DNA of 61,688 bases, filler included, from Basidiobolus meristosporus CBS 931.73 (Eukaryota > Fungi > Basidiobolomycota): NCBI GenBank assembly GCA_002104905.1. It is 4 parts of 4 records of this genome, joined end to end, with 100 filler letters (N's around TTAATTAATTAA, not from the genome) between each part and the next. Parts side by side here need not be neighbours in the genome. Positions count along the whole stretch, not along the records: positions 12,268 to 30,859 come from MCFE01001055.1; 3 more parts are not named here. One strand, written 5' to 3'. Each line of letters begins with the position of its first letter. The stretch's first letter is position 1. Of this stretch, positions 12,268 to 30,859 are shown piece by piece. Under the pieces are notes generated by a model, which was not told where the DNA came from, made no database searches, and was given only the letters and a program-made list of their open reading frames with translations. Made by a program: the position numbers and the translations under genes.

Positions 12268-13260
12268 ACTAGGGAATTGAGCTAGTTGATAATTACAATG
12301 CCTCTTTTTACCCCCCCCCACTGAACCTATGCCCCGGCACAGATAATTATTGACCAAAATTATTATGAAAGGCTTGCGTATGCAGGAGTGTCACCATACA
12401 GTCATTCCTGAGGTATGTGGGTGTGGTATGGATCTACTTGGTCCATATATCAATACAGTAACCCGCCCAGTGCGTACTACAACATCAAATGTTTTACATA
12501 TTCCTGTGCAATATACGAGAATCCGTAGGGAGGAACAGCAAAGGAAGCTTAAAGCGTTGATAATACATATTAAAGCATTGCAATAAATAACTCTTAGCCC
12601 CTTCATTTTGATTTTCGAATAAGTTAACAGTTGGGTAGAGTGGCGTCAATCTGTAGCTCAAGCTTCTGGAGAACTGGTTGGGTGAAGGCTTGAGTAGTGG
12701 GTCACTGCTGATGATTTCTATCCATGTTTTTTAGAGCCTAGTGTTGACATGGGCATCTTCAAGTAATTGCGAGATGGCAAGGTTATTACAGACTTGGGGA
12801 ACGCGTGAGGCTGGCAACAGAGCAACGAAAACCAAGCGCACTGGAGCAGTCAGAGGTTGGCAAGTCTGAGTGGATGGTCACCAGTAGCCGCTACAATAAA
12901 GTTCGACTACCGACTTACTCTTTTCCTGCTTTTATGCAAAGTTGTGTACCTGCTTAAACATTCAGTTATGAATTTTGATTTTAAAGATCAGAAAACTGTA
13001 ATCGGAATCAAACAAGTATGTCATTTTGCAAACAAAATTTTAAGCATTTTTCTTTTCAATGTGATTTTGCAGCAATATAAATTGATATTTTGAATGATAG
13101 TTGGATAACAGCAAGCTGTCAGAATGAGCGTACTGGGAATGTACTATATGCATAATCCTGTAAAGTACAGATGCTCTCTATTTATAGGAAAAAATTCGTT
13201 AGAAATTTTCACTCATTTCGTTGCCTAATCCCATAATATTGAAATCGACGAAAATAAATG
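12268..13260. repeat. Segmental duplication, copy 1 (copy 2 at about 24227-25400)
   Basis: Long near-identical blocks, e.g. 12640-13060 vs 24530-24970 (gtagagtggcgtc...gcaaacaaaattttaag). Confidence 0.9.
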
Positions 13261-13269
13261 TATTATATG

Positions 13270-13598
13270 TACTGTTGTGGACTGCTTGGCGTATTCCAGC
13301 GCGTTGGCCCCACCCTCCAGGTCGAGACTGGGTCCTGCTTGATACTTGGTATTGAAGCCTTTATAGCTGTTGGAGTTAGCAATGTTTAGGTTATTGTGGT
13401 TTCTGGTCACGGTGGTCAAACCTGGCACAATAACGGGGATTGAACATTGGACGTCTTAACAACGTTTTGGTAGCAATCATTCGTATACTGTACACATGGT
13501 AAACTGCGATAATGAACCCTTCTATACTCGCGAGTGCATGGAGAGTAACCGCCGATTGCGGCAAGGTCTAGAATCACTGCTACGGTAATAAAGCGCAT
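13270..13598 (-). pseudogene. Family A secreted-protein paralog, pseudogene
   Basis: MRFITVAVILDLAA then a deletion of the signal-peptide end, CTREYRRVHYRSLPC, a frameshift near 13430, and 3' truncation relative to 15181-15678. Confidence 0.85.
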
Positions 13599-13946
13599 GT
13601 GGAGTGAATAACGTATTTGTGGGCTGGTATATAGGCTTGGCTGGACAAATTGCTATAACTTATTTCATGGATTAATCAGGTCATTACTCACACTATCGCT
13701 ATGATACTTATATGCTGCCCTTGTATATTGTTGATGTAACACCACTTTGTGCTGCATATCCAATACTATACGAGATAATCCCTACTCCACCATGCCACTA
13801 AATTCCTTGAAAGTTACTGTTTCCGCACTTGCTCCTCTCCCTTTTTGCTGGGTAACCCCACAGACTAGGCTTAAGTTCTCCCGGCTTTTTCTGTCTTCTA
13901 AAAGCGATCCAGGGCGACAAAAAATACGTCAATCCCATCAGTTGCA

Positions 13947-14204
13947 TCATGAACACGCTTTGCCACGCTTCCACTCTGTGTACCTAGGCTTTGAGAAAGC
14001 TCCTGGATCATCCTCACGCATTCTGCGAACCTTACTTCCTGTCCAGAATGAAGATGGAAACTCTTCATTACACGCCTTTACGTTTTTATATAGCTCTACA
14101 TACTCGAGGGTTGCCGTAGTATTGGGTCGGTTGCGTTCAAGAGGAGCGGCAAAAGAGGATGCAAGTATCAAAGCACTGACTAAGAGGATATCTTGAGTAG
14201 ACAC
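13947..14204 (-). pseudogene. Family C small secreted protein (85 codons) with GTG where the paralog has ATG; start-lost or non-ATG
   Basis: (V)STQDILLVSALILASSFAAPLER... reads like a signal peptide, with TATAAAG just upstream. The paralog remnant at about 27690 reads ATG CTT TTC ATA AAT ATC CTC TTA, aligning ATG with GTG at 14202-14204. Confidence 0.55.
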
Positions 14205-14727
14205 TCCTCTACGGCCTTTATATTCGTTATTATACCTTCTTGGTTTGTAAGTCACACAACATGCAACTTTAATATTAATCACGCTTGGGAAGAACCCAGG
14301 GATGATTTAAACAGTCTAGTTCATCTGGTATAAAGTAGCACTTTTCTTGGATTGGATTCATCACTAAGCCATATCTCTTACATCTGTGCATCGATAACAG
14401 CAGTGTCTTGAACGATCATTACTCACTACTCAGTATCATCTAGACAATTGCCTCGTTTACAACTGGTTTATTGACCATTACATAGGAAAAGATCTATGTA
14501 CTTCGTCTTTGAGGCATCCATTGAATTTCAGTTTAATTTAGTCTGCCAAACCCGGGATTTTGTATTTATTGATCGTAAATTCGATTGCCATTTCTTCATT
14601 ATGAAAAGACACTGATGGGTAACGACAAAACAATAGGTAAAGATACTTTGTGATGCTTGCTTTGAGTGATGGTAGTACTTCAAGAATATTTGATTCGATA
14701 CGTTTTCGTAAGGTCCAAGTACAAGCT

Positions 14728-14809
14728 GGTGAGGTGGCCGAGTGGTCTAAGGCGCTGCGTTCAGGTCGCAGTCTCTTCGGAGGCGTGGGTTCGAACCCCA
14801 CCCTCATCA
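14728..14809 (+). tRNA. tRNA-Leu(CAG): tRNA-Leu (anticodon CAG), intronless, 82 nt
   Basis: Acceptor stem GGTGAGG/CCTCATC, D-arm GCCGAGTGGTCTAAGGC, anticodon arm CTGCG-TTCAGGT-CGCAG, long variable arm, GGTTCGAACCC T-arm, followed by TTTT. Confidence 0.97.
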
Positions 14810-15180
14810 CTTTTGTTATATTCCTATAGCTTGCACAAAAATTATAAGAGAAAATATCACAATGCTAACAGTTGCTGAGTAGTCTGTCAATCTCGAATAT
14901 TTGTGTTACCAAAGTCAATCCGGTAACCCTGCCAGGCATTCTCTCTGATATCAACCTTTTCAGTGGAGGGCAGCATCACTAAAGACTGAGGGTGAGTATG
15001 TTAGTACGTAAGCGAATATCTAATATTAATGCCCGCAGCTCTGATCATGATACAGGTGCGTGCAAGTAAAAAGCTAATCATAAGTAACAAATATAAGAAT
15101 GTCATTTGAACTTTATTGATTGAGGATTTTTACTAATAATGTGGTGACGGCTGCCTACATCTTCAGCTCATGTCATCGCA

Positions 15181-15678
15181 CTAATTGTATTGAACGTTTT
15201 GCTCTGGACAATCTTCTACGCATTGCATCTCTGCCACAGGGGTTGTGTATTGTATATCTTGGGTGGGCTGCATCAGGACGTAGGGAGAGAAAGAACCATC
15301 TTCCAAGTGTTCCGCTCCCTTTTGCTTAGCATATTCTAATGCGTTGGCCCCACCCTCCAGTTCGAGACTGGGCCCTGCTTGATACTTGACATTGAAGCCT
15401 TTGTTGCTGTTGGCGTTAGCAATGTTCAGGTTATCGTGCTTTCTGGTCACCGTGGTGAAAACCTGGCGCAATAACGGGGATTGGACATTCGTCGTCTTAA
15501 CGACAGGCAAAACTCGAGCGTTTTGGTAGCAATCGCTCGCATACTGTGCACATGGTAAGCTGCGATAATGCACCCTTCTATACTCGCGAGTGCATGGAGA
15601 AGAACAGCCGATTGGGACAGCAACGGCAACTTGAAGAGCGGCAAGGCCTAGAATCACTGCTACGGTAGTAGAGCGCAT
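15181..15678 (-). CDS. Family A predicted secreted protein, 165 aa, unknown function
   Basis: Signal peptide MRSTTVAVILGLAALQVAVA-VP, TATA element about 45 bp upstream, and two further paralogs in the contig. Confidence 0.8.
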   Translation of the reverse strand: MRSTTVAVILGLAALQVAVAVPIGCSSPCTREYRRVHYRSLPCAQYASDCYQNARVLPVVKTTNVQSPLLRQVFTTVTRKHDNLNIANANSNKGFNVKYQAGPSLELEGGANALEYAKQKGAEHLEDGSFSPYVLMQPTQDIQYTTPVAEMQCVEDCPEQNVQYN

Positions 15679-16030
15679 GCTGAAGAATAGCTGAGAAATG
15701 AGTTAGTTGCATAGGCCGCTATATAGCATGGGAGGCTATATAATAAGGCTAAGTCGAGGGCATAAAGTGAGTCTTGTTACATTCTATAGACTTTATTGAG
15801 GAAGCCTGTAACATATAAAACACATGCACTGGAATGACAGCCTCTGTATATATATATGGCTCTATCACCGCTGCCCATACTTCTCTTCAATACTCACAAT
15901 GACATTGTGTACAACGATAAGTGCCACTGTTTCTGTGTGTGCATATCAGCAAATTCTTGAGTACTGTACATCATCAGTATACCGAGTAATATGTTGCTCA
16001 TTTTATTTCGTAAATTTACTTTCACTAGAC

Positions 16031-16576
16031 TTAATATCTGTTTCCACTGAAATATCTAACTTTGAAGTGGCGACGAGCAGATCTCTTATACTTCTTGTAC
16101 CCACCTTTAAGCGCACGCGCTGCTGGCTGAGTGATGATAATTTGTGACTGTTGCTGCTTGGGCTGGTACAGGGTTTGGTCGATGACTTGCGCTTGGTCGA
16201 ACTGGTTTGAGTTGGACAAGGCATTGGCTTTACTGGAGGAATGGCCATTGATTTTGTCCAGCAAGGCTTGGGATGGTTGAAGATTGGAAATATCGAACCC
16301 TTGCAACCCAGAGAATCCTGGCTGCTCACCCGAAGTCTCGCTTGTCTGCATTGGCTCACTCATCTCCGAATCATCCCCCTCCTCAGTTGACGGCTGGTAT
16401 TCTTGACTGGGGGCCGAAGTGTCCTGATAACAAGCACCCTGTTGTTCGACGCATGGCTCATTGGTGAAGGCTACCGGGGAGTCACCGAGTGGGGTAGCGG
16501 AGATTGCTTGCAACGAAGCGATGGCGGAAACTAGCAAGAGGAAGGAAAGCTGCATGACTGGCTGGTGGAGTCTCAT
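16031..16576 (-). CDS. Family B predicted secreted Gln/Ser-rich protein, 181 aa (or 174 aa from the second Met), basic C-terminus
   Basis: Signal peptide MQLSFLLLVSAIASLQAISA-TP, TATAAA about 20 bp upstream, paralogs at 26590-27103 and about 30460-30660. Confidence 0.8.
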   Translation of the reverse strand: MRLHQPVMQLSFLLLVSAIASLQAISATPLGDSPVAFTNEPCVEQQGACYQDTSAPSQEYQPSTEEGDDSEMSEPMQTSETSGEQPGFSGLQGFDISNLQPSQALLDKINGHSSSKANALSNSNQFDQAQVIDQTLYQPKQQQSQIIITQPAARALKGGYKKYKRSARRHFKVRYFSGNRY

Positions 16577-17893
16577 GCGAATTTTGCCGATTTATATCAC
16601 CTCGATCCCACTCAATTAGGCTTCGTTCATAGCACTAGCTTTATACGAGCTAGATTGATTTAACCTTTGCTACTTTACCTCTTCGTACCAAGGCTACACA
16701 GTATAGGTTGCACTTCAAAGTGTGAGGAATGAGGGCGATCTGGTCAATGATATCCTTAATATCGTTCCAAATTCTCTCAGTTTTTGCAATAACTATCCGT
16801 GTTAGTAAGGACTTCGGTAATTTTTTACTAATGAGCTTGAGGGTTACCGTCCAGAAAGTCCAAGGTCATTGCGGTCAATTTCAATGGGGTTTGGTACTCT
16901 TTTGTATCAGTGTAGTCCTGTGAGCTTAACATGCACTTTTGGTATCTTTATTCCATCTTTAAGGCAAGTGTCTCTTACAATAGTCCTGTCATTGCCTGGA
17001 AGGTATTGTCCTTTGGTAGTGCTGTTTTCTTGCTGTACACATGATTAAATATATTGCTGATCTGACCCTGCCGCAACTGGAGAGCAGCAACCACGGTCAA
17101 GCTTTGGGGCAGGCTTATTAAATTAACCAGTTATTACAAGAACCTAGGGTTGTTGCTGATTGGTGAACGATACGACTGTCATGGGGTGTACAGCACAGTA
17201 CAGGCGAGAATAAATTGGTTAGTTTTTTGCCAAGAGTTGGGGATATTGAGTGGATAGTGCTTGGGATAGTTGAGGCTGCCTTGGAATTTCTTGTTGTAGT
17301 ACACGCGTTTTCAATTAGTTATTTGTCAAGAAACAAGCCAATTGTGCCTGTTCACTTTATTTGTGTTACGCTTTATCTATGCTGCTACCATTGATAGCTT
17401 GGATGGCGATGCTTTCTTGCAAGACACATGCACTTATCTATTGCAAACTTTACCCTGCCACAGATGGAGTACAGCGTCGGATTAAGAGCTCAGCCACCGA
17501 CTACCACGGTCATTCTTTTGGGCAGGTTGATTATATAACCTGTTATTTCAAGAACAGACTCATTGCTGATTGGTGCAAATCCTTGTCACCAATGACCGGC
17601 ATGGTGCATAGAGACGGTGCCGGCATGAAGGAAATATTCATGGATGTGCTTAGCTAGTACTGGTTTCCTCAGGTAATGTTGCAGATTTGGCCTCAACTGT
17701 AACCATTCATGATTTCTGGATCATTTCTCCAAGCTTGGCCTAAGACTCAGCACTTTAGGTGGGAAGCCGCTATACTTAGTAGAAAAGGGCACATGAAGCA
17801 GCCAACACTAAGCCACCACCTGGATAAGGTGATATAAAGCAGCAGGTGTGGGCTTGTCAGTCTCAAGACCTATTGCACTCCACTTTCTCAGCC

Positions 17894-18112
17894 ATGGTAT
17901 CCGATCAAGAAGCCCGTTTGTATTCTGCCGATGTCAGAGAAGAAATTGCCAGAGCCAAGAGAGCTAACAACGGGAACTACGCCTCAGTCACAGTCAAAGG
18001 GATTCGCTGGACTTGGAGAGGACCCGGAACTGGCGAGCTGTCCTTCAAGCAGATCCTCGAGGGGAGAAAGGGGACTGCCTGCGTGGATAGCCAGACATGG
18101 GCAATCTCGTAG
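17894..18112 (+). CDS. Family D small protein copy 1 (72 aa), no signal peptide, unknown function
   Basis: GATATAAAG about 60 bp upstream and gccATGG context. Differences from copy 2 are mostly synonymous in this frame. Confidence 0.6.
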   Translation: MVSDQEARLYSADVREEIARAKRANNGNYASVTVKGIRWTWRGPGTGELSFKQILEGRKGTACVDSQTWAIS

Positions 18113-18882
18113 GGTTTGGTTGGTGCTTGCGTAGCCGGTGGACTCTTGGAGATGTTACTGTTAAGGATATTTAGCTGAAACATTGCGAAATAAATTCATC
18201 CAAATCCGCATTCCTTTGACCTAGCTGTGATATGCTCAATGATGCAAAAAGCATTGCATTACAAACATCCAGCACATTTGCTACCTCAAGTCCACATAAC
18301 AGTGACATTTTGTACCTTAAGCCTTGCACTTCCACAGTTTTCAACGATATATTACTAGTCACTGGAATATCCAATCCTCAATGCGTATTTTTTAAATCGT
18401 TGCATTATTGAGTCGGTGTGAATCTTCCCTTTAATAACTTACTGCATGGTTAGGCCGTGTACGTGTAACCATCAGTCCATGGAGATGTTGTGGCTGCACA
18501 GTCTTGGCTGTATAACTTACTGAGTGTCATTGTTGCAAGAGATAACAAGTGTGGATATTGGATAATATATACTGATTGTCGTGGGTGTCTTTGGCTTCAC
18601 CACAGTTGGCCATCCAGTCTTTGCATCTGGTTCATGCCATGCTTGACCAATCCACTCAACGTAAACAACTATTCATCTGGAAGGTGCGTGGATGGTGCGT
18701 GGATGGTTCGTTACCGGCGGACAGTCAATCTGGATTACTTGCTATAAATTGTTGCGGGCTGTATGGAATAAGTGAGGCGTCAAAATGCCGTAGTATTGAG
18801 TCACCGTCTGGGCGGGATAGATATAAAGCAGCAGTTGTGGACTTGTCTGTCTTGAGACTTATTGCACTCCACTTCCTCAGCC

Positions 18883-19107
18883 ATGATATCTGATCAAGAA
18901 GCCCGTTTGTACTCTGCTGATGTCAGAGAAGAAATTGCCAGAGCCAAGAGAGCTAACAACGGAAACTACGCCTCAGTCACAGTGAAAGGGATTTGCTGGA
19001 CTTGGAGAGGACTCGAAACTGGCGAACTGTCCTTCAAGCAGATCCTCAAAGGGAGAAAGGGGACCGCCTGCGTGGATAGGTTTGGTTGGTGCCTACATAG
19101 CCGGTAG
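18883..19107 (+). CDS. Family D small protein copy 2 (74 aa)
   Basis: Tandem duplicate of 17894-18112 with the same TATA. An approximately 23-nt indel changes the C-terminus. Confidence 0.55.
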   Translation: MISDQEARLYSADVREEIARAKRANNGNYASVTVKGICWTWRGLETGELSFKQILKGRKGTACVDRFGWCLHSR

Positions 19108-19949
19108 ACTCTTGGAGATGTTGCTGTTAAGGATATTTAGCTGAAGCATTGTGAAGTAATAAACATTCCTTTGACCCAGCTGTATTATGCTCATTGCACT
19201 TTATTAAATATATGTGAATTGCTATTTTGATTGTCTAAGTGTGCAACTGCCATGTACAGGCTAAACTTGCAGCTTTCAGTATCTCAGGTTCTATTGTTTT
19301 TACAGACAAAGATAAATATTTTCTCGGGGGTGAATAGGCTGAACATCCTTTCCACAAGACTTGGTAATATGTTATCGTGAAATTCACACTTACCAGGTGT
19401 GGGGCAAGTATTACTGTTGTCCAAGGTTGATGATTCTGTGAACAGAATAGGAAATTTCAAAGGCGCCTTCATTATACCTTTTTCGAATAACCGTCATACA
19501 GATACAACACGCTTTACGATACAGTTGAAAGATAAAGATGTGATATCGAAGAGTGTTATTGTAGGGATGTGTAGAGTTCAAGAGTGAATGGCAACTACTT
19601 CAACGAATATTCTTGGCGTATTTTTAGTTGCAGTGGAGAGTATTTCTTCAGATACCGGGAGCAAAAACGGATATTTTGAATAAACATTAAAGTGATTTAA
19701 TGGTATCACGGGCCCTGATCTTGGGGGGAATAAATAGTCACATACGTCTACTAGTGTATTTATGCTTATTGTCCAGCATCCACCAGAGGTTTTTGACAGA
19801 GTAGCACTGTTATTTATACCGTTGTAAATGATGTGTAGCATGTATGGTTAGAATACCCCAACATACACTGTTTACTTCTTTATACAGCTACTTTGTATAC
19901 TTGCATTATTTCTAGCATTCAACATTGAACGTATTGGATTTATTGATTA

Positions 19950-20147
19950 TCAGATACAGCATCTCTGGCCAGACTTGCATCCAGTATCCCAGAACACGGA
20001 TCTCCAACCGGTGGGGCAGCCACCAGAAACGCACAAGGAGCCTCTTGAGTTCCCTTGGGCTTGGCACGAGAGAGCATCTACGGAGCCAGAACTGAAGCTG
20101 GCCACAAGGAAGGCGACCATCAAGGAGACTGCAAATTTCTTCATCAT
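19950..20147 (-). CDS. Secreted six-cysteine defensin-like peptide, copy 1 (25-aa signal + 40-aa mature)
   Basis: MMKKFAVSLMVAFLVASFSSGSVDA / LSCQAQGNSRGSLCVSGGCPTGWRSVFWDTGCKSGQRCCI. C-x10-C-x4-C-x12-C-x5-CC spacing; TATATA about 55 bp upstream. Confidence 0.85.
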   Translation of the reverse strand: MMKKFAVSLMVAFLVASFSSGSVDALSCQAQGNSRGSLCVSGGCPTGWRSVFWDTGCKSGQRCCI

Positions 20148-21187
20148 TGTTTTGATTGAGAGCTTAGTGTGTGAATGATGTCTAGCAGCAAGGTTAGCGC
20201 AATATATAGGCGTCATTTCCCCATTGTTGCACATACTTTTGTCAATAGTTGTCTACGAATGGTTGTACAAGAGAAGAAGGTTACCTGGGTAATGTAAACC
20301 AGTTCCAGGAAATTATATGTATTGATGGCCAACATCAAAAGAGCAGTAGCGTTTAAATGGTATTTCTCGTATGGCATAGTGTCACCTCTTTATTCAAACA
20401 TATAAATGATGCGGCAATAATATGCAAAATCTGAACTGGGCTGCTCATCACATTTTGTGCCACACAGCTTTTGCCGTGCAATACACTCATCTACGAAGAA
20501 TGTTCTAAATGCAGTACCACACGGATGAAAGTAAGCCTTCCCTGTTATTTTCAAGTGTAGAACTACTTTGCCGATAGTTCAATAGAAAATTTATTAGGTA
20601 GATACAACATCTTTGGTGTCCCGGAATACCAACCTTTGACCAATACCTGAAGGGCGCAAGTAGAGAGTGTCAACACAGCTGGCCTCAATAATGGCAGGTA
20701 AGGAGAGTTGTAACATGTAAAGTAACCAAGTACTCTTGAAGCATGTGCAATATAGGTCATTACGTACACTGCTAATTATCCAACTCTGTGCAAAGCACTC
20801 ACTCAACGGTTGTTGTGGCTAGGCAGTCTGTAACAGTGGAACATGTAAACCAGCTCTATACACGAATAACAATGTAATGGTTACATTCACTCTACTTATT
20901 GACAGTTATAGCAATCATGATATGCAGCATTGTTGCTTATACAGTGTAAATGATATATAGCACTGTGGCAAACAACAGTTCAATAGATGGTTCCCAATAC
21001 AGTTGCACATATTAAGCCCCAAAGATGAGACCAGCATATTTTGCTATACTATTGACTCCCATTATACTGCTATATAGTTGCTGCTTGCTTCTTAAGCACT
21101 AATCTCCGTATATACAATACGGCTTGTCTCTAGCATCTGCATTGTCATGTGTACGTTCCACATTGAACGTACTGGATTTATTAACTA

Positions 21188-21385
21188 TCAGATACAGCAT
21201 CTTTGGCCAGACTTGCATCCAGTATCCCAGAATACGGATCTCCAACCGGTGGGGCAGCTACCGGAAACGCACAAGGAGCCTCTTGAGTTCCCTTGGGCTT
21301 GGCACGAGAGAGCATCTACGGAGCCGGAACTGGAGCTGGCCACAAGGAAGGCAACCATCAGGGAGACTGCAAGTTTCTTCATCAT
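21188..21385 (-). CDS. Secreted six-cysteine defensin-like peptide, copy 2
   Basis: Intact 65-aa ORF; the mature peptide differs from copy 1 only by G18S. Confidence 0.85.
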   Translation of the reverse strand: MMKKLAVSLMVAFLVASSSSGSVDALSCQAQGNSRGSLCVSGSCPTGWRSVFWDTGCKSGQRCCI

Positions 21386-22461
21386 TGTTTTGATTGAGAG
21401 CTTAGTGTGTGAATGATGTCTAGCAGCGGGGTTGGCTCAATATATAGGCGTCATATCCACATTGTTGTACATACTTTTGTCAATAGTCGCTGTGGCTAGC
21501 TCTAGGAATGGTTGTACAAGAGAAGAAGGCTACCTGGGTAATGTAAACCAGTTACACAGAGCTGCAGCATTGAGATGATATTAATACACAAAAACAAATT
21601 GGCAATCCATGAACCGGGTTGCTCATCAGACATGCCATATATAGTGGTAGTTCTACACCAATAAAGCATCTTTGGCCTCTAACTGGAAAGTAAATCAAGA
21701 CCTCAAGATGCATAGACAATCTTGATAATTACGTTTACTGTAACACGTACATTCCATGACTGTTGTGGCTAAGCAGTCTGTGACAACAGAATGAGTGTGG
21801 ATACATTGATTACAGTCAAATCTACCATTTGAGACTTAAAGCGGTAACGATATTCAATCGAGATATGCAAAGTCCTAGGTAACACTGTCGCTTATAAAGT
21901 ATAAATGAATCTTGATTTTTAAGCCTAGATGCTGCTATTTGCAATAACACGCAAGTATTTGATATAACTTTAGTGTTTGTAACGATTTGCATTGATTTTG
22001 CTACAAGTAAATATAGATATGAGATTGCTGTCCCACTTGGGAATTGAAATATGTTGTGTTCTTTACGACGACTTAGCCGATAATTCATTAGATAATTTAT
22101 TACGTAGATACAACATCTTTGGTGTTCCGGAATATCAAACTTTGACTTACGCCTGAAGGGCGCAAGTAGAGAGTGTCAACACAACTGGCCTCCATAATGG
22201 CAGGTAAGGAAAGTTGTAATATGTAAAGTAAGCAAGTCCTCTTGACGCATGAGCAATACAGGACATCATGTACACTGTTACTTATCCTTCCTCTGTGCAA
22301 AACACTCACTCACATAAAGAGGAGGCTAGCATATTTTGCTACACTTTGGCCATAGTTACTGCTTGCTTCTTAAGCGCCAATCTCCGAATACTCTGTCCTG
22401 TTTCTAGCATCTGCATTATTGTGTGTAAATTCAACATTGAACATATTGGATTTATTAACTA

Positions 22462-22659
22462 TCAGATACAGCATCTTTGGCCAGACTTGCATCCAGTATC
22501 CCAGAACACGGATCTCCAACCGGTGGGGCAGCTACCGGAAACGCACAAGGAGCCTCTTGAGTTCCCTTGGGCTTGGCACGAGAGAGCATCTACGGAGCTG
22601 GAACTGGAGCTGACCACAAGGAAGGCGACCATCAAGGAGACAGCAAATTTCTTCATCAT
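22462..22659 (-). CDS. Secreted six-cysteine defensin-like peptide, copy 3
   Basis: Intact 65-aa ORF; mature peptide identical to copy 2. Confidence 0.85.
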   Translation of the reverse strand: MMKKFAVSLMVAFLVVSSSSSSVDALSCQAQGNSRGSLCVSGSCPTGWRSVFWDTGCKSGQRCCI

Positions 22660-22803
22660 TGTTTTGATTGAGAGCTTAGTGTGTGAATGATGTCTAGCAG
22701 CAAGGTTAGCTCAATATATAGGCGTCATTTCCCCATTGTTGCACATACTTTTGTCAATAGTCGCTGTGGCTAGCTCTACAAATGGTTATGCAAGAGAAGA
22801 AAG

Positions 22804-22815
22804 TTACCCGGGTAA
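22804..22815. promoter_or_regulatory. Palindrome TTACCCGGGTAA about 150 bp upstream of the defensin-like gene; variants upstream of every copy
   Basis: TTACCTGGGTAA at 20281-20292, CTACCTGGGTAA at 21530-21541 and 22835-22846, each followed by TGTAAACCAG. Confidence 0.4.
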
Positions 22816-24226
22816 TGTAAACCAGCTCAGAAGGCTACCTGGGTAATGTAAACCAGTTCCACAAAGCTGCAGCATTATGGCATAGTGGTACAGAGTTAAT
22901 GTGGTATTAATACACAAAATCAAAATCCATAAACCGGGTTGCTCATCAGATATGCTATTGTGTAGGGGTAGTTCTACACCAATAAGGCATCTTTGGTCTC
23001 TAACGGGAAAGTAAATCAGGACCTCGAGATGCATAGACAATGTTGATAATTACGTTTACTGTAGCATGTACATTCTATGGCTGTTGTGGCTAAGCAGTCT
23101 GTAACAATGGAATGAGAGTGAATACCGTTTGAGACTTAAAGCGGTAATGATATTCAATCAACATATGCAACGCCCTAGGTAGCACTGTCGCTTATAAAGT
23201 ATAAATGATATATAACATTGTTGCACATGGTCTGCGATAAACACTAGCTAGAGAACCCCAAAAATACCGATGAATCTTGATTTTAAATCTAGATGCCGCT
23301 ATTTGCAATAACACGCAAGTGTTTGTTGGATGACTCTTTGATTTTTCGTCATTCCACATACAAGTAAATATAGATATGACTAAGTGGTATGCAATGGCTT
23401 TGTGGATAAGAAGCTTACTACTTTTCATTCATTAAAGTAGTGACTAGTGGTGAAGTTTATCCACAGCTTACATTAATAAGACTTTACCCGTGGAAATACA
23501 CACTGAAGATTAAGATATTTACCATCTGGGCACTAACTGCCTGATCCTCTTTCCCTCATATCCCGACATGTGCTTGTGCATACAAGTGCGTTGTTAGACT
23601 TTTAGGTAGCATTGGTATTGCCACTATTGCCCTACTTAGAGTTGAACCAAGAGTACTGGTGAAATGAGCGAAGTGCAATTTAATGAATCAATCAGTGCTG
23701 TTCATTGTCCTTGTCAAGCCATAACAAAATATTCGGTTAGGCCATCAATCCATTCAAATTGTTCATGTCTCTAGAGCGGGCTAAGTCTTGGCATAGTGGT
23801 GGGCTGAGATGATAGACCCGAATCGAGGCTACATTCACTGCGTTGGTGGCAAGAAAACTGAGTATGTAACACCGCAGGTTTGTTCATTCATTTCAATGAA
23901 GCCTTTTTGGATGAGAAATAGAAGTACGATAACAGCCATGCATCCTCAATACTTCGGTGCATGCGTTGGTATGCCGGCCAAACTCCGCACTTCCCATTGT
24001 AAGATGAGCTATGAGGAATCAAGTCGGCAATCTCCAGAATAACCGTGTCAAACACTCTTCTTCCGGATTGAGCGTTTTCTTTGGCGCATTTGTCTACCCA
24101 TAGACCATGGTTACTGAGATGTGAGTGTAATATACAACAATGCAAGGCATATTTTAAGAGAACACGTACGCTTTTGGACCTGACTTACCGGAGTAAGGAC
24201 TTCACCTTTGAAACAGTGTCTGTGGT

Positions 24227-25400
24227 ACTAGGGGATCGAGCTAGAAGCGAGATAAATAGATTGATAATTACAATGCCTCTCTGTACCCCCCCCCCCACTG
24301 GCAATATGCCCCAGCACAGATAGCTATTGCCCGAAATCATTACGCAGGAGTGTCACCATACAGTCATTCCTGAGGTATGTGAGTGTGGTATGGGTCTACT
24401 AAGGAACAGTAAAGGTAACCTAAAGCGATGGTAATGAATATCAAAGTATTGTAATAAATAATCTCAATCCCATAACTCTTAGCCCCTTCATTCTATCTTT
24501 CGCTAAATTTCGATTTTCGAACAAGTGAGCAGTTGGGTAGAGTGGCGTCTATCTGTAGCTCAAGCTTCTGGAGAACTGGTTGGGTGAAGGCTTGAGTAGT
24601 GGGTCCCTGCTGATGATTTCGATCCATGTCGAGGGCGTTGTCCTCTGGAGCCTAGTGTTGACATTGGCATCTTCAAGTAATTGCGAGATGGCAAGGTTAT
24701 TAAAGACTTGGGGAACGCGTGAGGCTGGCAACAGAGCAACGAAAACCAAGCGCACTGGAGCAGTCAGAGGTTGGCAAGTCTGAGTGGATGGTCACCAGTA
24801 GCCGCTACAATAAAGTTCGACTACCGACTTACTCTTTTCCGTTTTTTATGCAAAGTTGTGTGCCCGCTTAAACATTCAGCTATGAGTTTTGATTTTAAAG
24901 ATCAGAAAACTGTAATCGTAATCATACAAGTATGTCATTTTGCAAACAAAATTTTAAGTATTTTTCTTTTCTTTGCTTGCTGATTTTCAATATGAATATG
25001 TAGCGAGAGAGATTGGTATTTTGATTTGATTTTTGAATGATATTTGGTTAACAACAAGCTGTCAGAATGTGCAGACCGTCCTCGCCAGGCTGTTGGAATA
25101 ATCAACCGGCAAGTTCATCAACTGAACAGGTCCTAAGGTCCCGAAAGACCGATCGGCCACTGTTCACACTTCCCTTTACGGACAGCGCACTACGTCTCAT
25201 CTACCAGCTTGGTATTAGTGTCTTTGTTGGGAAACAAAGACTGGGAATGTACTATATACATAATCCTGTAAAGTACAGTCGTAACGATACCAAACGACAG
25301 ATGCCCCCTATTTATAGGGAAAAAATCGATAAAATTTTTCACTTATTTCGTGGCCAAATCCCATAATATTGAAATCGACGAAAATAACAGTATTATATAT
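24227..25400. repeat. Segmental duplication, copy 2 of 12268-13260 (with an extra segment at about 25065-25240)
   Basis: Direct alignment by eye. Confidence 0.9.
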
Positions 25401-25999
25401 ACTACTCCGGACTTGAGTAATTGACTATGAAATAACCAACTACGTAAGAACAGTGCCATTCCTGTGTGCACGCTTCAAGCCCTTGCTTGAGAAATCGTAG
25501 TATGAGTCATTTTGCGTCTCACGAATAATGCAATCGTATGTCGACTTGAACCAAAAATCACATTTACGGCAATTTAACCCCCAATATCGATACAACTATT
25601 TACAGATCGATGGAATGAGTACACAAACATTGAAACTGGCGCTAAATAGGGCTCACTGACATCTTAAGGTAGGAGCCCACCAGTTCTCCAAATGCGGTAG
25701 TTGATACACAACGCTGATTGAGCTTCTCTACCCGGCTATGTTGCATGCACTATTTACCCTACAGTGTCCCTGTTCCTCCGGTGTGTGTCGTTGTGGGGTA
25801 TTGCCAAATGTCGATTCTTTTTGGACTGGTACACCATGTCTACCGTGGATTGATAGTCTATGATACTGTGAGAGTAGGGTAGTCGCGCAAAGAGGGCTTA
25901 TTTGTCTTGCATACTCAATATTCTCAGTTAAGGCTGATTTATCTATTAGGCGCAATTGTCAGCACAATGAGTGTATTGAATATTTTGTTCTTTCACACA

Positions 26000-26428
26000 T
26001 TATGTCTCTGTTACTGGGGTTGTGTACTGTACATCTTGGGTGGGCTGCATCAGAACGTAGGGAGAGAAAGAACTATAGGCCTTTTGCTTGGCATATTCTA
26101 ATGCGTTGCCCCGACCCTCCAGTTTAAGGCTGGGCCCTGCTTGATACTTGACATTGAAGCCCTTATTGCTGTTGGCATTAGCAATGCTCAGGCTATCTTG
26201 CTTTCTGGTCACGGTGGTGAAAACCTGACGCAATAATGGGGATCGGACATTGGGTGTCTTAAAAACAGCCAAAACTCGAACGTTTTGGTGGTAATCGGTC
26301 GCATACTGTACACATGGTAAGCTGCGATAATGAACCCTTCTATACTCGCGAGTGCATGAAGAAGAACAGCCGATTGGGGCAGCAACGGCAACTTGATTCG
26401 CGGCAAGGCCTACAGTAATAAAGCGCAT
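26000..26428 (-). CDS. Family A paralog, 142 aa, open frame but shortened signal peptide (possibly decaying)
   Basis: MRFITVGLAANQVAVAAPIGCSSSCTREYRRVHYRSLPC...; internal deletions relative to 15181-15678. Confidence 0.55.
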   Translation of the reverse strand: MRFITVGLAANQVAVAAPIGCSSSCTREYRRVHYRSLPCVQYATDYHQNVRVLAVFKTPNVRSPLLRQVFTTVTRKQDSLSIANANSNKGFNVKYQAGPSLKLEGRGNALEYAKQKAYSSFSPYVLMQPTQDVQYTTPVTET

Positions 26429-26589
26429 GCGGAGCGAATAACGTATTTGTGGGCTGTTGTATAGCATACAATATGGGTTAGCTGGGAAAATTGCTATTAT
26501 ATATTTCATGGATTAATCAGGTCATTACTCACACAATTATTATGCTTTTTAAGTACCATCGGTATTTTGCATTCCCTTCACTCGTTATT

Positions 26590-27103
26590 TTTTCAATTTT
26601 CTTCCATTATTTTGTGGAACTCACGATGATTTTCTGGAGTATCTTTGAAGTGGCGACGAGCAGAGCTAAAATACTTCTTGTACCCACCTCTACTGCTGGC
26701 TGAGTGATGATAATTTGTAGAGGGTTTGATCAATGACTTGCGCCTGATCGAACTGATTTGAGTTGGACAAGGCATTGGCTTTACTGGCAGAATGGCCATT
26801 GATGTTGTCCAGTAAGGCTTGGGATGGTTGTAAATTTGAAATGTCAAACCCTTGCAACCCGAAGTCTGGCTCGTTTGCATTGGCCCACTCATCTCCGAAT
26901 CATCCACCTCCTCAGTTGACGGCTGGTGTTCTTGACTGGGGGGCTAAGTGTCCTGATAACAAGCACCCAGTTGTTCGACGCATGGCTCATTGGTTGAGGC
27001 TACCTGGGAGCCACCAAGTGGGGCAGCGGAGATTGCTTGCAGTGAAGCGATGGCGGAAACTAGCAACAGGAAGGAAGGCTGCATGACTGATTGGTGAAGT
27101 CAT
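26590..27103 (-). pseudogene. Family B paralog, frameshifted
   Basis: High nucleotide similarity to 16031-16576. Small deletions after the ATG and after the signal peptide give an early TAG. Confidence 0.85.
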
Positions 27104-27439
27104 GCGGACTCTCTCGATCCCACACAATTAGCTTTATGCGAGCTAGATTGATTAACCTGAGTGCCTCGCCGTTTGCTACTTCTCAAAAAATGTGAGACAG
27201 TGCATACACGAAATAGTAATCAGCATTTAATTTCAACCAAGTGCTTATAGTATAAAGCTAGCAGTAGACAATGAGAATGTAGACGTTGGGAAGAGTGATG
27301 CTTAAAAGAGGGCACAGTAGTTCTTGGCGCAATTAGTGTTGTCAAAAACGCAGTCCGAGTCCTTGGTGCATGTCTGATATTCGGAGCCACTGCAAAAAGA
27401 CTTTAGCGTCAGTAAGAATGCAAACTTACTAAACCTTTG

Positions 27440-27700
27440 GATATTGTTGATGTAACACCACTCTGGTGCACTTTGCTACATATCCAATGCCAAACGAGAT
27501 AATCGCTACTCCTCCATGGCACTGAATACCTTGTAAGTTACTGTTTCTGTACAGAAAACTCCATGGCAACTTACCCTTCTCCAGCAGTAGCCTTTGTTAC
27601 ATATCCTTGCCGCCTTTTTGCTTAGTAATCCCACAGACGAGGTTTGAGCTTTTTGCTGTCTGCTCAAAGCGATCCAGCTAAGAGGATATTTATGAAAAGC
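27440..27700 (-). pseudogene. Family C region remnant (paralog of 13725-14204) with large deletions
   Basis: gatgtaacaccact...gagataatc...aagttactgtttc and aaagcgatccag/taagaggata are shared with 13725-14200. Confidence 0.65.
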
Positions 27701-29031
27701 ATTTTGTCGTTAAGTGTTTCTTGAATGGTCACTCCTAACAACTAGCGGATATTGCTTTGCTTTTTTGAGGATGGTTCTTGTTTGCACCCATAATTGCAAT
27801 AATCCTTTGATTGGTCGTAAAGCTGGTTCAGTCGTTGATATACAATCTTCTACGCATCTACGCGGAGCTTTCCCGATTTATTAAACCTTCTCAATCCCAT
27901 TCAATTAGGCTTCGTTCATAGCATTATGCAAGATAGATTGATTTAACCCGGTTGGCTTAGAGTACTCGTGTGAATAAATTTATTTGTTGTTTGTCAAGAG
28001 TCGACAATATTGAGTGGATAGTACAGGGATTAGTTGAGGTTACCTTGGGCTTTCTTGTTGCGATATACGCACTTTTGATTAGTTATATGTGTTCGGCATT
28101 TGACTGTGCCAATACACTCGAAAACCTGGATTCCCACAATTGATTTATCAGTGTAGCTTGCCTGAATGAAGGTTTGATATGACGAGCCCTTTGGTACCCA
28201 TGTTCCATCTCTAAGCAGGGAAGGCGCCACACTCTTTGCCTCTGGCAAGTCGTTGAATAAATGACATAGCTTCTCCCCATGAAATAAGTTTATACGGCAC
28301 AGGTAGCATATCCTCCTGATGCAGAGGTATCAGCCTCATCCAAGATAGCTAGATTGACTCTGTGGTTGAGGCCTTCATTCTTGCCTTGGTTGGCGGCATT
28401 GAAAGTCAGGGTAATGAAGTCAATCTTGGCCAATTTCTTGATGTAAAGGCCCGCAGTATGTTCCTTCACTCCTTGTTCAGGATTGCATTTTAGACTCTCT
28501 TGGGGAGGCAAGGGCACTGCATTGGTACCGCTTCACCGGGTCACTTGAGTTGAGTTAGCACTTAGAGGTCAACATTTTGCATTTACCATTACCATGATGA
28601 GACAATGAACCTATTAAAAGATTTTGACTCTGTTAATCAGTTCTAACCATATGTGAATAATTAAGTAACTGTAATTAAGTTTTGACAGTGATAATGCTTA
28701 TCATTCAGGTACACAGCATTTTCTTCACCATCTCTCTGCCTCAACCAGACATTGCTAGACCAGAAGCTTGGGAGCTTATATAGTCAAGATTGGACTGAAC
28801 CAAAAGGCATTAGAAGAGAATAGGATAAGGTAATATCAAGAACCAAAGGGAGGGCTGGGTGTACTATTTATGTGCTTTTTGGTTGGATCACTGAAGCTGG
28901 GGTTATACTCCTGGCAAAGTATACTGGGGGCCAGAGCTTGATGCATATTTTTGTATTTTCTAATGTATGCTCAAGATAATGAACTAGATATGCAAGCACA
29001 CAAAACCATTGTTTACAGCAAATACATTATA

Positions 29032-29373
29032 TGGTGAATTTTGTAATTACACCTAGAGATCCACCATCATGATTACTTGGATATAGTCCACAGGCTAAGA
29101 GAGCTCTGACTAAGCTCCTTGTTGGGGTTTACTTGGAATAGCTCCACCAAAGTACAGGCACTTAAGAAATGAAATATCTCAAAGTTGCCAATACAATCCC
29201 CAAGCTTTGCACATATACTCTTGGGACATTCCTAAGCATATTTCATAGTGCCTGTCTTGCAAAGAGTATACAAAAGTGCACATACTACTTTAACTTACAA
29301 CATATCATTAAGTGAATGCCAAATAATCTACTTATCTCTTGGTAAACTTGAATACCTCCAAGACTCCACAACA
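29032..29373. mobile_element. Older, diverged copy of the 350-bp LTR seen at 8732-9081
   Basis: Colinear similarity: ctcaaagttg...ctttgcaca...tcttgggac...tcattaagtgaa...ataatctactt...ctccaagact..acaaca. Confidence 0.65.
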
Positions 29374-30459
29374 AACTGATAGCTTGTATCAAAACAGCTC
29401 ACATAAAGTTAGCTTGCCATTGTCTACTAAATTAGCCATTCCTTCAACACTAACCATGAATATTACTAATACATAGCAGCCACTTATCATTACTCATAAA
29501 AGCTAGCCAATCCATATTAGGGTGCATCCAATGTATCCTTGAGAATCGCAATGGTGCATAAGGAATGTGTACCAATACAACCTGGGGAATTAGGCATGTT
29601 GTATTCAGAGTAGGGCTTCTTTAGGATGCCAAGCACTCCTAGATTGTAGATAAACTTGCAATGAATGAGATTCTTTAGTTGGAGAGCATGTTGGAAATGC
29701 TTTTCAGAATATGTGTATGCTGACTACAAGTGATCTATGTATATCATAAATAAAACCATATTGATCAAACTATAAATAGTCACCAATATATACCAACAAT
29801 AGTAGAACTGTATTGCTTGGTCATGAACCAATAGTTTCAATCTACAATGCAAGTATTCAATGCAGAGGAAAGCTACTATGCCACTATAGCTACCCAATCA
29901 CACTTTGGTAAATAAAAACAATATTTGAAGCAAAACATATACACCAGTATGAACTTGGGAATTACAAGCTGACTCCTTGATGTGGCTTAGAGGTGCTATA
30001 TATGGGTGCATAGGCCAGATGAGAACTGCTGGAAATCCTGCCTTCCAAGCTCTCTGTATATGCATGTAGTGGTAGATTTGAATGTGCATTCACAATGTTG
30101 ATATCTTAGCTGTGCTTGCTGCCTTCATTCCTGTGTGTGATTGGTATGAAACTCAGTTGTTTACTCACTTATGAAAGGAGCAAAAGCTGGCTAATAGCAC
30201 ACAGTAACATGAAGCCATATTGAGGTGCATTGTTCTATGTAATACTCAACAATGGTTCTTAATGACTTCGAAGCACATGAGGCTGGCATGTTAGAGTATA
30301 ACCACCAAGCAAATCTCTTACATTCATGATGGGTAGATAGAGGGTCTAATTGATGACCTATGCTTTGTCAAACTACTTAGGGTTTAGTAATGCATTGGCC
30401 TCACTGGAAAAGCAGCCTTTAAAAATGCCGATTCTTTGCAACTTTACTTTTTAGAATTC

Positions 30460-30660
30460 AATCTCTCAAATCTAAGTCGCCTTCATTGTCAGTCAATGAT
30501 AGGTCTTTGTTGTTGGAAGCCAGTGCCTCCTGATAACAAGCTCCCAACTGCTCAGCACATAGGTTGTTGATGTGAGATACCTGAGATTGACAAAGATGTG
30601 ATTGCCGCAACAAGCAAGAGGAAGGAAAGCTGCGTGACTGGATGGCGGAATCCCTCAGAA
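30460..30660 (-). pseudogene. Third family B remnant
   Basis: The minus strand gives HPVTQLSFLLLVAAITSL and, in a shifted frame, LCAEQLGACYQE. Confidence 0.7.
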
Positions 30661-30859
30661 AGTTGCCGTACTTCCATTACTTTCTCTACGCCACTCAAGT
30701 TACCATTTATTTATTTGTGACATTAACTTCATGCTAGTCGAGCAACAGATATCATATATCGCATAAAATTAGTTTCAGTCATCCATTGGTCAATTGTACG
30801 TAGCCATGATAAAATGATCAACAGTGACACTCTCCCAAGTAGTGAAATTCAGAGAACTA

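Follow-up and report, generated by a model that had tools for sequence, protein, structure and literature searches.

An amplified block of genes for predicted secreted proteins in Basidiobolus meristosporus and its tandem triplet of six-cysteine peptides

Is a short scaffold crowded with small genes, many of them broken, a self-contained arsenal of secreted proteins, or is it one instance of an arrangement that the genome of Basidiobolus meristosporus carries many times over, and which of its products might act outside the cell? The DNA that raises this question, positions 12268-30859 of the window (the whole stretch that was analysed, 61,688 nucleotides with filler), is the entire scaffold MCFE01001055.1 of B. 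meristosporus CBS 931.73, 18,592 bp in length. We consider it probable, on balance, that the scaffold represents one of many copies of a block, amplified by segmental duplication and then left to decay unevenly, and that its triplet of peptides, which are predicted to be exported, has the predicted function of acting on a microbial surface.

Genes, relics and duplications on the scaffold

Five intact genes with signal peptides lie on the scaffold, namely A, B and three tandem genes for 65-aa six-cysteine peptides (the defensin-like genes), and 8 of the 13 protein-family units are broken or doubtful. The protein-family units and RNA genes are, in order:

12630..12917, plus strand: SRP RNA gene, damaged (Rfam Metazoa_SRP, 122 bits)
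13110..13170, minus strand: U3 snoRNA relic, limits approximate, from alignment to the second segment
13264..13598, minus strand: A'', truncated pseudogene with a 1-nt frameshift and in-frame deletions; homology does not extend into the 3' third of the gene
14728..14810, plus strand: tRNA-Leu(CAG) (ARAGORN; Rfam tRNA, 55.7 bits)
15181..15678, minus strand: A, intact, 165 aa, signal peptide, six cysteines; identical to a protein in a public collection
16031..16555, minus strand: B, intact, 174 aa from the second ATG; 98% identity to P0052
17894..18178, plus strand: C copy 1, without a signal peptide; in-frame stop at 18110-18112, ahead of a hydrophobic tail
18883..19144, plus strand: C copy 2, its tail put out of frame by a 23-nt deletion
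19950..20147, minus strand: defensin-like gene 1, 65 aa, intact
20562..20806, minus strand: D relic 1, without ATG, TATA box or signal peptide
21188..21385, minus strand: defensin-like gene 2, 65 aa, intact
22068..22312, minus strand: D relic 2, a repeat of D relic 1
22462..22659, minus strand: defensin-like gene 3, 65 aa, intact
24532..24831, plus strand: SRP RNA gene, intact (Rfam Metazoa_SRP, 166.6 bits, full model)
25057..25282, minus strand: U3 snoRNA gene (Rfam U3, 66.6 bits, full model)
26000..26428, minus strand: A', with a shortened signal peptide, the fourth cysteine lost and a stop ahead of the C-terminal cysteine motif
26593..27084, minus strand: B', pseudogene in which an early stop interrupts the frame and 22, 22 and 10 nt are deleted at three places
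30298..30652, minus strand: B'', pseudogene with the start codon lost and stops in all frames

The copy numbers given in the first-pass annotation (three each of A, B and the defensin-like gene, two each of C and D) were all recovered, as genes, remnants or repeats. Both of the modes of duplication that it described were also found: the tandem units measure 1238 and 1274 bp, and an old segmental duplication pairs 12286-17326 with 24261-28090 at approximately 80% identity. A, B and the triplet stand intact beside the decayed A', A'', B' and B''; with tandem and segmental paralogues, pseudogenes next to intact copies and heuristically recognised signal peptides, the scaffold is a birth-and-death cluster of genes for predicted secreted proteins, as had been proposed. 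TATA boxes lie 41-64 nt upstream of the ATG of A (-47 and -64), B (-41), C (-61 in copy 1) and the defensin-like genes, and AATAAA is present 3' of A, B (at +24) and the defensin-like genes (at +6). Signal peptides had been ascribed to most of the genes; by a hydrophobicity heuristic, only A, B and the defensin-like genes encode such N-termini, and neither C nor D does.

The scaffold had also been said to hold no housekeeping or enzyme gene. This stands for the protein-coding frames, none of which has a Pfam match (none of 30 scaffold ORFs reached a family's curated cut-off), and fails for RNA: four RNA genes absent from the earlier description, two for SRP RNA, one for U3 snoRNA and one for tRNA-Leu, are present. 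In the damaged SRP RNA gene, helix 5 lacks approximately 11 nt on one side and eight base pairs are broken, and the U3 relic differs from the intact U3 gene by an internal deletion of 165 nt and a further deletion of 22 nt.

Neither inverted repeats nor transposase- or reverse transcriptase-like ORFs were found on the scaffold, and the block therefore shows no sign of being a transposon. The idea of a single island has to be given up, as the A-B pair recurs on many further scaffolds and a defensin-like gene is placed three accessions from A on three others. The block shows how the B. meristosporus genome multiplies secreted-protein genes along with RNA genes.

Families A to D

Family A comprises approximately 93 distinct sequences and family B approximately 70 (summed cluster sizes in each case), all of them from B. 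meristosporus and B. ranarum. Together the two families extend over more than 25 scaffolds; at least 17 contigs carry both, with adjacent protein numbers. Identity to the B. ranarum counterparts is 35-51%, with invariant motifs. B. meristosporus has approximately 16,000 gene models, of which A and B would together make up on the order of 1%, without annotation.

The best Pfam match among the 30 ORFs was that of A to Myticin-prepro, at an E-value of 0.0025 and short of the family's curated cut-off, and the AlphaFold model of A (pLDDT 45.6) predicts a largely disordered protein. A dN/dS of 0.40 between A and A' is a sign of mild constraint only. We also considered derivation of the cysteine-rich N-terminus of A from the peptide domain, and rejected it when hhalign paired the signal peptides only, with a probability of 1.6%. 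The B protein is acidic in its N-terminal half (pI 4.1) and basic in its tail (pI 11.1). A public gene model, P0081, joins pseudogene B' to A'.

Family C gave no Pfam match and no meaningful sequence match in the PDB; its second copy differs from the first by approximately 7-8 synonymous and 5-6 non-synonymous changes, counted by hand. The D relics and the defensin-like genes share just a 31-nt 3' end, made up of the last codons and AATAAA (z approximately 6.9). Descent of D from a decayed peptide gene was dropped as an explanation because the common part is confined to these 31 nt, which we take as a hint. On present evidence, neither C nor D counts as a family of secreted-protein genes.

The six-cysteine peptide and its relatives

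Removal of the predicted signal peptide would leave a mature defensin-like peptide of 40 residues (4.2 kDa), mildly cationic, with six cysteines in the framework C-x10-C-x4-CP-x12-C-x5-CC followed by one last residue. Of the whole tandem unit, this mature part has diverged least: between copies 1-4 of its 120 nt differ (three changes synonymous, one non-synonymous), compared with 5-6 of 75 nt in the signal peptide and 15-33% in the 3' flank. The similarity among the three copies could be due in part to gene conversion. Public models P0001-P0003 splice out the final CC of the peptide, and UniRef names the Basidiobolus peptide models 'CBM1 domain-containing'.

An exhaustive HMMER search gave 21 matches, from which P0083, P0093 and P0099 were discarded as relatives because their scores were sums of short repeated matches. 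In the true homologues, all unnamed, the six cysteines, CP motif and aromatic core are retained (18 of 18), and the domain core holds a conserved trio of aromatic residues. Their sources include Agaricales, Dothideomycetes, sciarid fungus gnats and a springtail, and where a source is named it belongs to one of three phyla of fungi or two groups of arthropods. Spacings of 10-13, 4-8, 12-15 and 5 or more residues characterise the family, and the order of cysteines and the terminal CC are kept in 17 of 17 aligned members. Most members are stand-alone peptides of 63-90 aa, predicted to be secreted; P0084 consists of three tandem six-cysteine units, and in P0088 the unit is added C-terminally to another domain. 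Judged by these sequence relatives, the defensin-like family is not lineage-specific, since fungus-feeding arthropods and fungi of other phyla have it too; the restriction to one lineage that had been proposed holds for A and B, which were found in Basidiobolus only. The family tree did not resolve, and the direction of any transfer between fungi and arthropods therefore cannot be claimed.

The single-sequence AlphaFold model of the peptide (pLDDT 78) has three strands and no helix. Defensin-type folds dominate its Foldseek matches, which are weak (best E 0.25). In the VIA comparison with 48,161 chains, 18 reached a Z of 2 or more, every one of them with a defensin-type fold and again with a weak score (best Z 2.6). 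The folds matched are those of beta-, alpha- and big-defensins and sea-anemone toxins. A three-stranded fold of beta-defensin type is thus predicted, with the caveat that the model may simply echo the cysteine pattern. Loops 2-4 of the family are in or near the beta-defensin ranges; loop 1 has 10-13 residues, where 4-8 are usual in beta-defensins.

Sequence searches named no class. Pfam returned no family for the mature peptide at E-values up to 10 and no defensin family for 17 members at E-values up to 1; searches of PDB sequences with the peptide and with the family profile gave nothing meaningful, and the ESM Atlas no usable match to the peptide. Membership of the cis-defensins (CS-alpha-beta) was rejected, as these combine CxxxC...CxC with a helix, and the peptide ends in CC, has no CxC and is modelled without a helix. 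The CBM1 class was likewise rejected: Pfam CBM_1 gave no match even at an E-value of 10, and no CBM1 chain appeared among the Foldseek or VIA matches.

Of the two superfamilies into which defensins fall, only the cis one is attributed to fungi, and the described fungal defensins belong to it (PMC8877149). The 65-aa peptides may be an undescribed family with the first trans-defensin (beta-/big-defensin) fold in fungi, and their presence in sciarid gnats and a springtail may be the result of transfer between fungi and arthropods that feed on them; we put this forward tentatively, as a possibility clearly less likely than not. If true, a conserved fungal trans-defensin family would bear on the origin of the fold and on whether it passes from one kingdom to another. 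Small and unnamed, the family lends itself to testing by means of a synthetic 40-mer.

Possible functions and comparison with known systems

Three kinds of gene in the block would be working genes for secreted products: the peptide triplet, A and B. The peptide would be exported, fold with three disulfides and bind a target on a microbial surface or wall outside the cell, which would give it an antimicrobial or competitive role. The adjacent pair A and B might, at a guess, supply matrix, wall or precursor proteins for export, largely disordered and with short, very conserved motifs. Of these products, the six-cysteine peptide is the sole plausible candidate for an antimicrobial role.

That peptide might instead be a stand-alone carbohydrate- or wall-binding module, lectin- or CBM-like, that works on the fungus's own wall or anchors partners and kills nothing. 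The aromatic trio in the domain core would suit such a module, as would the tandem and C-terminally added units of P0084 and P0088, the 'CBM1 domain-containing' label, and published cysteine-rich repeats ending in CC that adjoin glycosidase, glucosaminidase and peptidase domains (bioRxiv 10.64898/2026.06.07.730663). We nevertheless regard it as unlikely, if deserving of weight, given the failure of CBM_1 to match in Pfam, the lack of any CBM1 structure among the fold matches, and the prevalence of stand-alone secreted peptides among the members.

A more sceptical reading would make most of the block debris in a repeat-rich, poorly assembled region, its open frames kept since the duplications are recent or homogenised and its products unused. 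The high proportion of broken or doubtful units, the many near-identical copies on short scaffolds and the forced public models (P0081, a fusion of two pseudogenes, and P0001-P0003, without the final CC) all agree with this. It is nonetheless very improbable in view of the preservation of A and B with invariant motifs in B. ranarum, the conservation of the peptide over fungal phyla and into arthropods, and the low divergence of its mature part within the tandem unit. Basidiobolus lives in animal guts, and the products could also be effectors or immune modulators aimed at the gut of an amphibian or reptile host and not at microbes; the expanded secreted families are genus-specific, and peptides with a defensin fold include sea-anemone ion-channel toxins. 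Such a target seems highly unlikely to us, as the peptide family is also present in saprotrophic mushrooms, plant pathogens and arthropods without such a host. We prefer the reading of an amplified block with a peptide triplet directed at a microbial surface.

Among the nearest known counterparts of the peptide are the beta- and big-defensins, in which the disulfides pair C1-C5, C2-C4 and C3-C6 and whose trans-defensin fold is also that of sea-anemone defensin-like toxins. Shared with them are a small, cationic, secreted six-cysteine peptide with a terminal adjacent CC (export being predicted here), multi-copy tandem genes and a predicted three-stranded sheet; no folds but theirs came up in both Foldseek and VIA. 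The Basidiobolus peptide differs in its longer first loop, its intronless gene, the lack of a sequence-profile match and its fungal host, where the cis superfamily is the described kind (PMC8877149).

Like the peptide, the CysRReps of Daugavet et al. (bioRxiv 10.64898/2026.06.07.730663) have six cysteines in approximately 40 residues, a terminal CC and glycines ahead of the second cysteine. They too are patchily distributed over fungi and metazoa, for which gene transfer is discussed there. Their spacing, Cx6-9Cx5-7Cx8-11Cx7-8CC, is not that of the peptide family (10-13, 4-8, 12-15 and at least 5), which by spacing falls outside the CysRReps; theirs flank enzyme domains, whereas the Basidiobolus units stand alone. 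The species that hold the peptide family are absent from the CysRRep matches in the portion of the published text that was available. CBM1 shares with the peptide a small disulfide-bonded sheet (predicted in the peptide), exposed aromatic residues and the UniRef name, but has four cysteines and not six, and offers no Pfam or structural match. Finally, the hairpin-loop peptides, putative antimicrobials of many fungi and a few arthropods whose distribution is explained by transfer from fungi (PMC13357843), resemble the Basidiobolus peptide in having a signal peptide, three disulfides (predicted here) and occurrence in both fungi and arthropods, and differ in their two-helix fold, length of approximately 85 aa, weakly acidic character and unrelated sequence.

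Scaffold architecture and RNA genes

Positions 12268-30859 comprise a complete scaffold (18,592 bp, G+C 37-46%) of Basidiobolus meristosporus CBS 931.73. The 165-residue product of 15181-15678 (- strand) has a letter-for-letter match in the public collection, and the mates in its cluster are all K493DRAFT proteins of CBS 931.73. Gapped and ungapped self-comparisons reveal an old segmental duplication, with 12286-17326 (segment 1) matching 24261-28090 (segment 2) at ~76-84% identity. The order within the duplicated segment is SRP RNA, U3, A and B, where A and B are families of signal-peptide proteins. The two segments flank a tandem array whose units measure 1238 and 1274 bp. The principal features, other than the peptide genes, are as follows.

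12630-12917, + strand: SRP RNA, second copy, damaged (Rfam, 122 bits)
~13110-13170: U3 relic of segment 1, with 165-nt and 22-nt deletions
13264-13598: A'', third A copy, frameshifted and truncated
14728-14810, + strand: tRNA-Leu(CAG) (Rfam / ARAGORN)
15181-15678, - strand: A, intact, 165 aa, exact public protein match
17894-18178 and 18883-19144, + strand: family C copies, TATA box at -61
24532-24831, + strand: SRP RNA, intact (Rfam, 166.6 bits, full model matched)
25057-25282, - strand: U3 snoRNA (Rfam)
30298-30652: B'', third B copy, start codon lost, many stops

Decay of the two segments is complementary. Segment 1 retains intact A and B, with a damaged SRP RNA (~11 nt missing from one strand of helix 5, eight pairs broken) and U3 mostly deleted; segment 2 retains intact SRP RNA and U3, but its B copy (B') has been lost to an early stop codon and deletions of 22, 22 and 10 nt, and its A copy (A') is truncated. 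The A' signal peptide is shortened, one cysteine is gone and a stop falls upstream of the C-terminal Cys motif. Between 28500 and 30250, an A+T-rich stretch (G+C 37%), there is almost no ORF of at least 60 aa, and no repeat or RNA match.

The anatomy described by the first-pass annotation proved sound, apart from the RNA genes. Its statement that no housekeeping gene is present holds for proteins, as none of 30 ORFs has a Pfam match reaching a curated cut-off, but it missed the four RNA genes found with Rfam and ARAGORN. Its interpretation proved partly right: the reading as a birth-and-death block of secreted-protein genes stands, but the block is one of many copies. The function of the block's secreted proteins is something we infer.

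Protein families of the block

We scanned for ORFs of at least 35 aa that begin with ATG, encode a hydrophobic N-terminus and have a TATA box upstream. Apart from one 43-aa ORF without clear meaning, the only ones recovered were A, A'', B and the three peptide genes. TATA boxes lie 41-64 nt upstream of the ATG, and AATAAA follows the stop by 6 nt in the peptide genes, 24 nt in B and 64 nt in A. Judged by the position of its TATA box, B probably starts at the second ATG (16555).

Word-based searches found relatives of A and B in B. meristosporus and B. ranarum only, at 35-51% identity, amounting to ~93 A-like and ~70 B-like distinct sequences (summed cluster sizes). Members of the two families occur together on at least 17 contigs, and their protein numbers are often consecutive. 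Several public models are A/B fusions; one of them, P0081, lies within the window and runs across a stop to link the two pseudogenes B' and A'. In two B. ranarum proteins, P0049 and P0050, a conserved A core is followed by a conserved B core and a basic, Cys-rich B-type tail, and this joining of the two cores in single proteins suggests that the families share an origin. A and A' differ with a dN/dS of 0.40 at a dS of 0.32. An AlphaFold model of A from a 23-sequence alignment (pLDDT 45.6) has hardly any secondary structure past the signal peptide. In B, the N-terminal half is acidic (pI 4.1) and the Q-rich core shows strong conservation. The tail (C-terminal 25 residues, 16031-16105) is basic (pI 11.1), contains dibasic sites and shows high conservation between B. 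meristosporus and B. ranarum. This layout, which recalls that of pro-peptide precursors, invites tentative interpretation as a precursor or a wall-matrix protein.

Families C and D both lack a signal peptide. The family C substitution pattern leans synonymous, and the ORF is followed by a hydrophobic 21-residue tail, which one copy loses to an in-frame stop and the other to a 23-nt deletion; a search for relatives of C gave none. Its TATA box is placed like those of the peptide genes. Family D lacks both ATG and TATA box, and the only sequence it has in common with the peptide genes is a 31-nt 3' end.

The six-cysteine peptide and its relatives

The block's most interesting member is a six-cysteine peptide encoded by three genes (19950-20147, 21188-21385 and 22462-22659, all - strand). 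Each product is 65 aa long, of which 25 residues form the signal peptide and the other 40 the mature part (4.2 kDa, pI 8.7, charge ~+2.7). Between copies, 1-4 of 120 nt differ in the mature part (three synonymous sites, one non-synonymous) and 5-6 of 75 nt in the signal peptide; the upstream 160-170 nt are 6-9% divergent and the 3' flank 15-33%. In the public models P0001-P0003 the final CC-I is swapped for a tail reached via a predicted ~57-nt intron, and P0004 is a fusion of two tandem peptide copies. We take the tails to be gene-prediction artefacts, because in all other species it is the unspliced ORF, with CC at its end, that is conserved. The public models P0001-P0004 and P0081 (21188-21385 and 22373-22408) look forced. 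UniRef names for the near-identical paralogues P0001-P0019 vary ('CBM1 domain-containing', 'SCP domain-containing', 'Uncharacterized'), and none is backed by Pfam for the window's proteins.

A word search with the peptide recovered the Basidiobolus cluster only; HMMER against 1.84 billion representatives gave 21 proteins at E ≤0.001. Three were rejected, their scores being spurious totals over short repeats. In the remaining 18, the six cysteines, a CP pair and an aromatic core are all retained, and most of these proteins stop directly after CC. The named sources are fungi (Pleurotus eryngii, P. djamor, Leucoagaricus, Coprinopsis, Pseudocercospora musae and Septoria linicola), the fungus gnats Bradysia odoriphaga and Pseudolycoriella hygida (on 2.8-Mb and 193-Mb contigs) and the springtail Orchesella dallaii (2.3-Mb contig); relatives with named sources are all annotated as hypothetical. 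The proposed lineage-specific secreted arsenal does not fit this peptide, whose 18 relatives extend to mushrooms, fungus gnats and a springtail.

The arthropod relatives (P0089, P0091, P0103 and P0095) belong to fungus-feeding animals, two sciarid gnats and a springtail. Locus tags of the two Pseudolycoriella genes are consecutive, and in the Bradysia model nine extra residues, which may be an unspliced intron, precede the final CC. In P0084 and P0088, from environmental or run assemblies, the six-Cys unit occurs, respectively, as three tandem units and as a C-terminal addition to a domain with repeated Cys-containing motifs.

Transfer of the peptide gene between fungi and arthropods is plausible, given that springtail transfer candidates often match B. 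meristosporus best (PMC5644144) and that another peptide family has the same fungus-to-insect pattern (PMC13357843). Branching in the six-Cys family tree did not resolve.

Predicted fold and nearest published motif

The peptide has no Pfam family match and no PDB sequence match, and a literature text search found no paper on its core motif. AlphaFold, from the single sequence, predicts three strands (pLDDT 78). Of 48,161 chains compared, only 18 reach Z ≥2, and all 18 are defensin-type folds (beta-, alpha- and big defensins, and sea-anemone peptides); the 49 Foldseek matches are mostly these same folds. The match scores (Z 2.6, E 0.25) are weak, as can be expected of a 40-residue chain, and the cysteine pattern itself may be what the model echoes. 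The peptide belongs to a broader family, undescribed and predicted to adopt a defensin fold. A review (PMC8877149) assigns fungal defensins to the cis superfamily. Among published motifs the closest is the cysteine-rich repeat of Daugavet et al. (bioRxiv 10.64898/2026.06.07.730663); this repeat ends in CC, as does the present family, but in the comparison made here, by cysteine spacing, the two differ.
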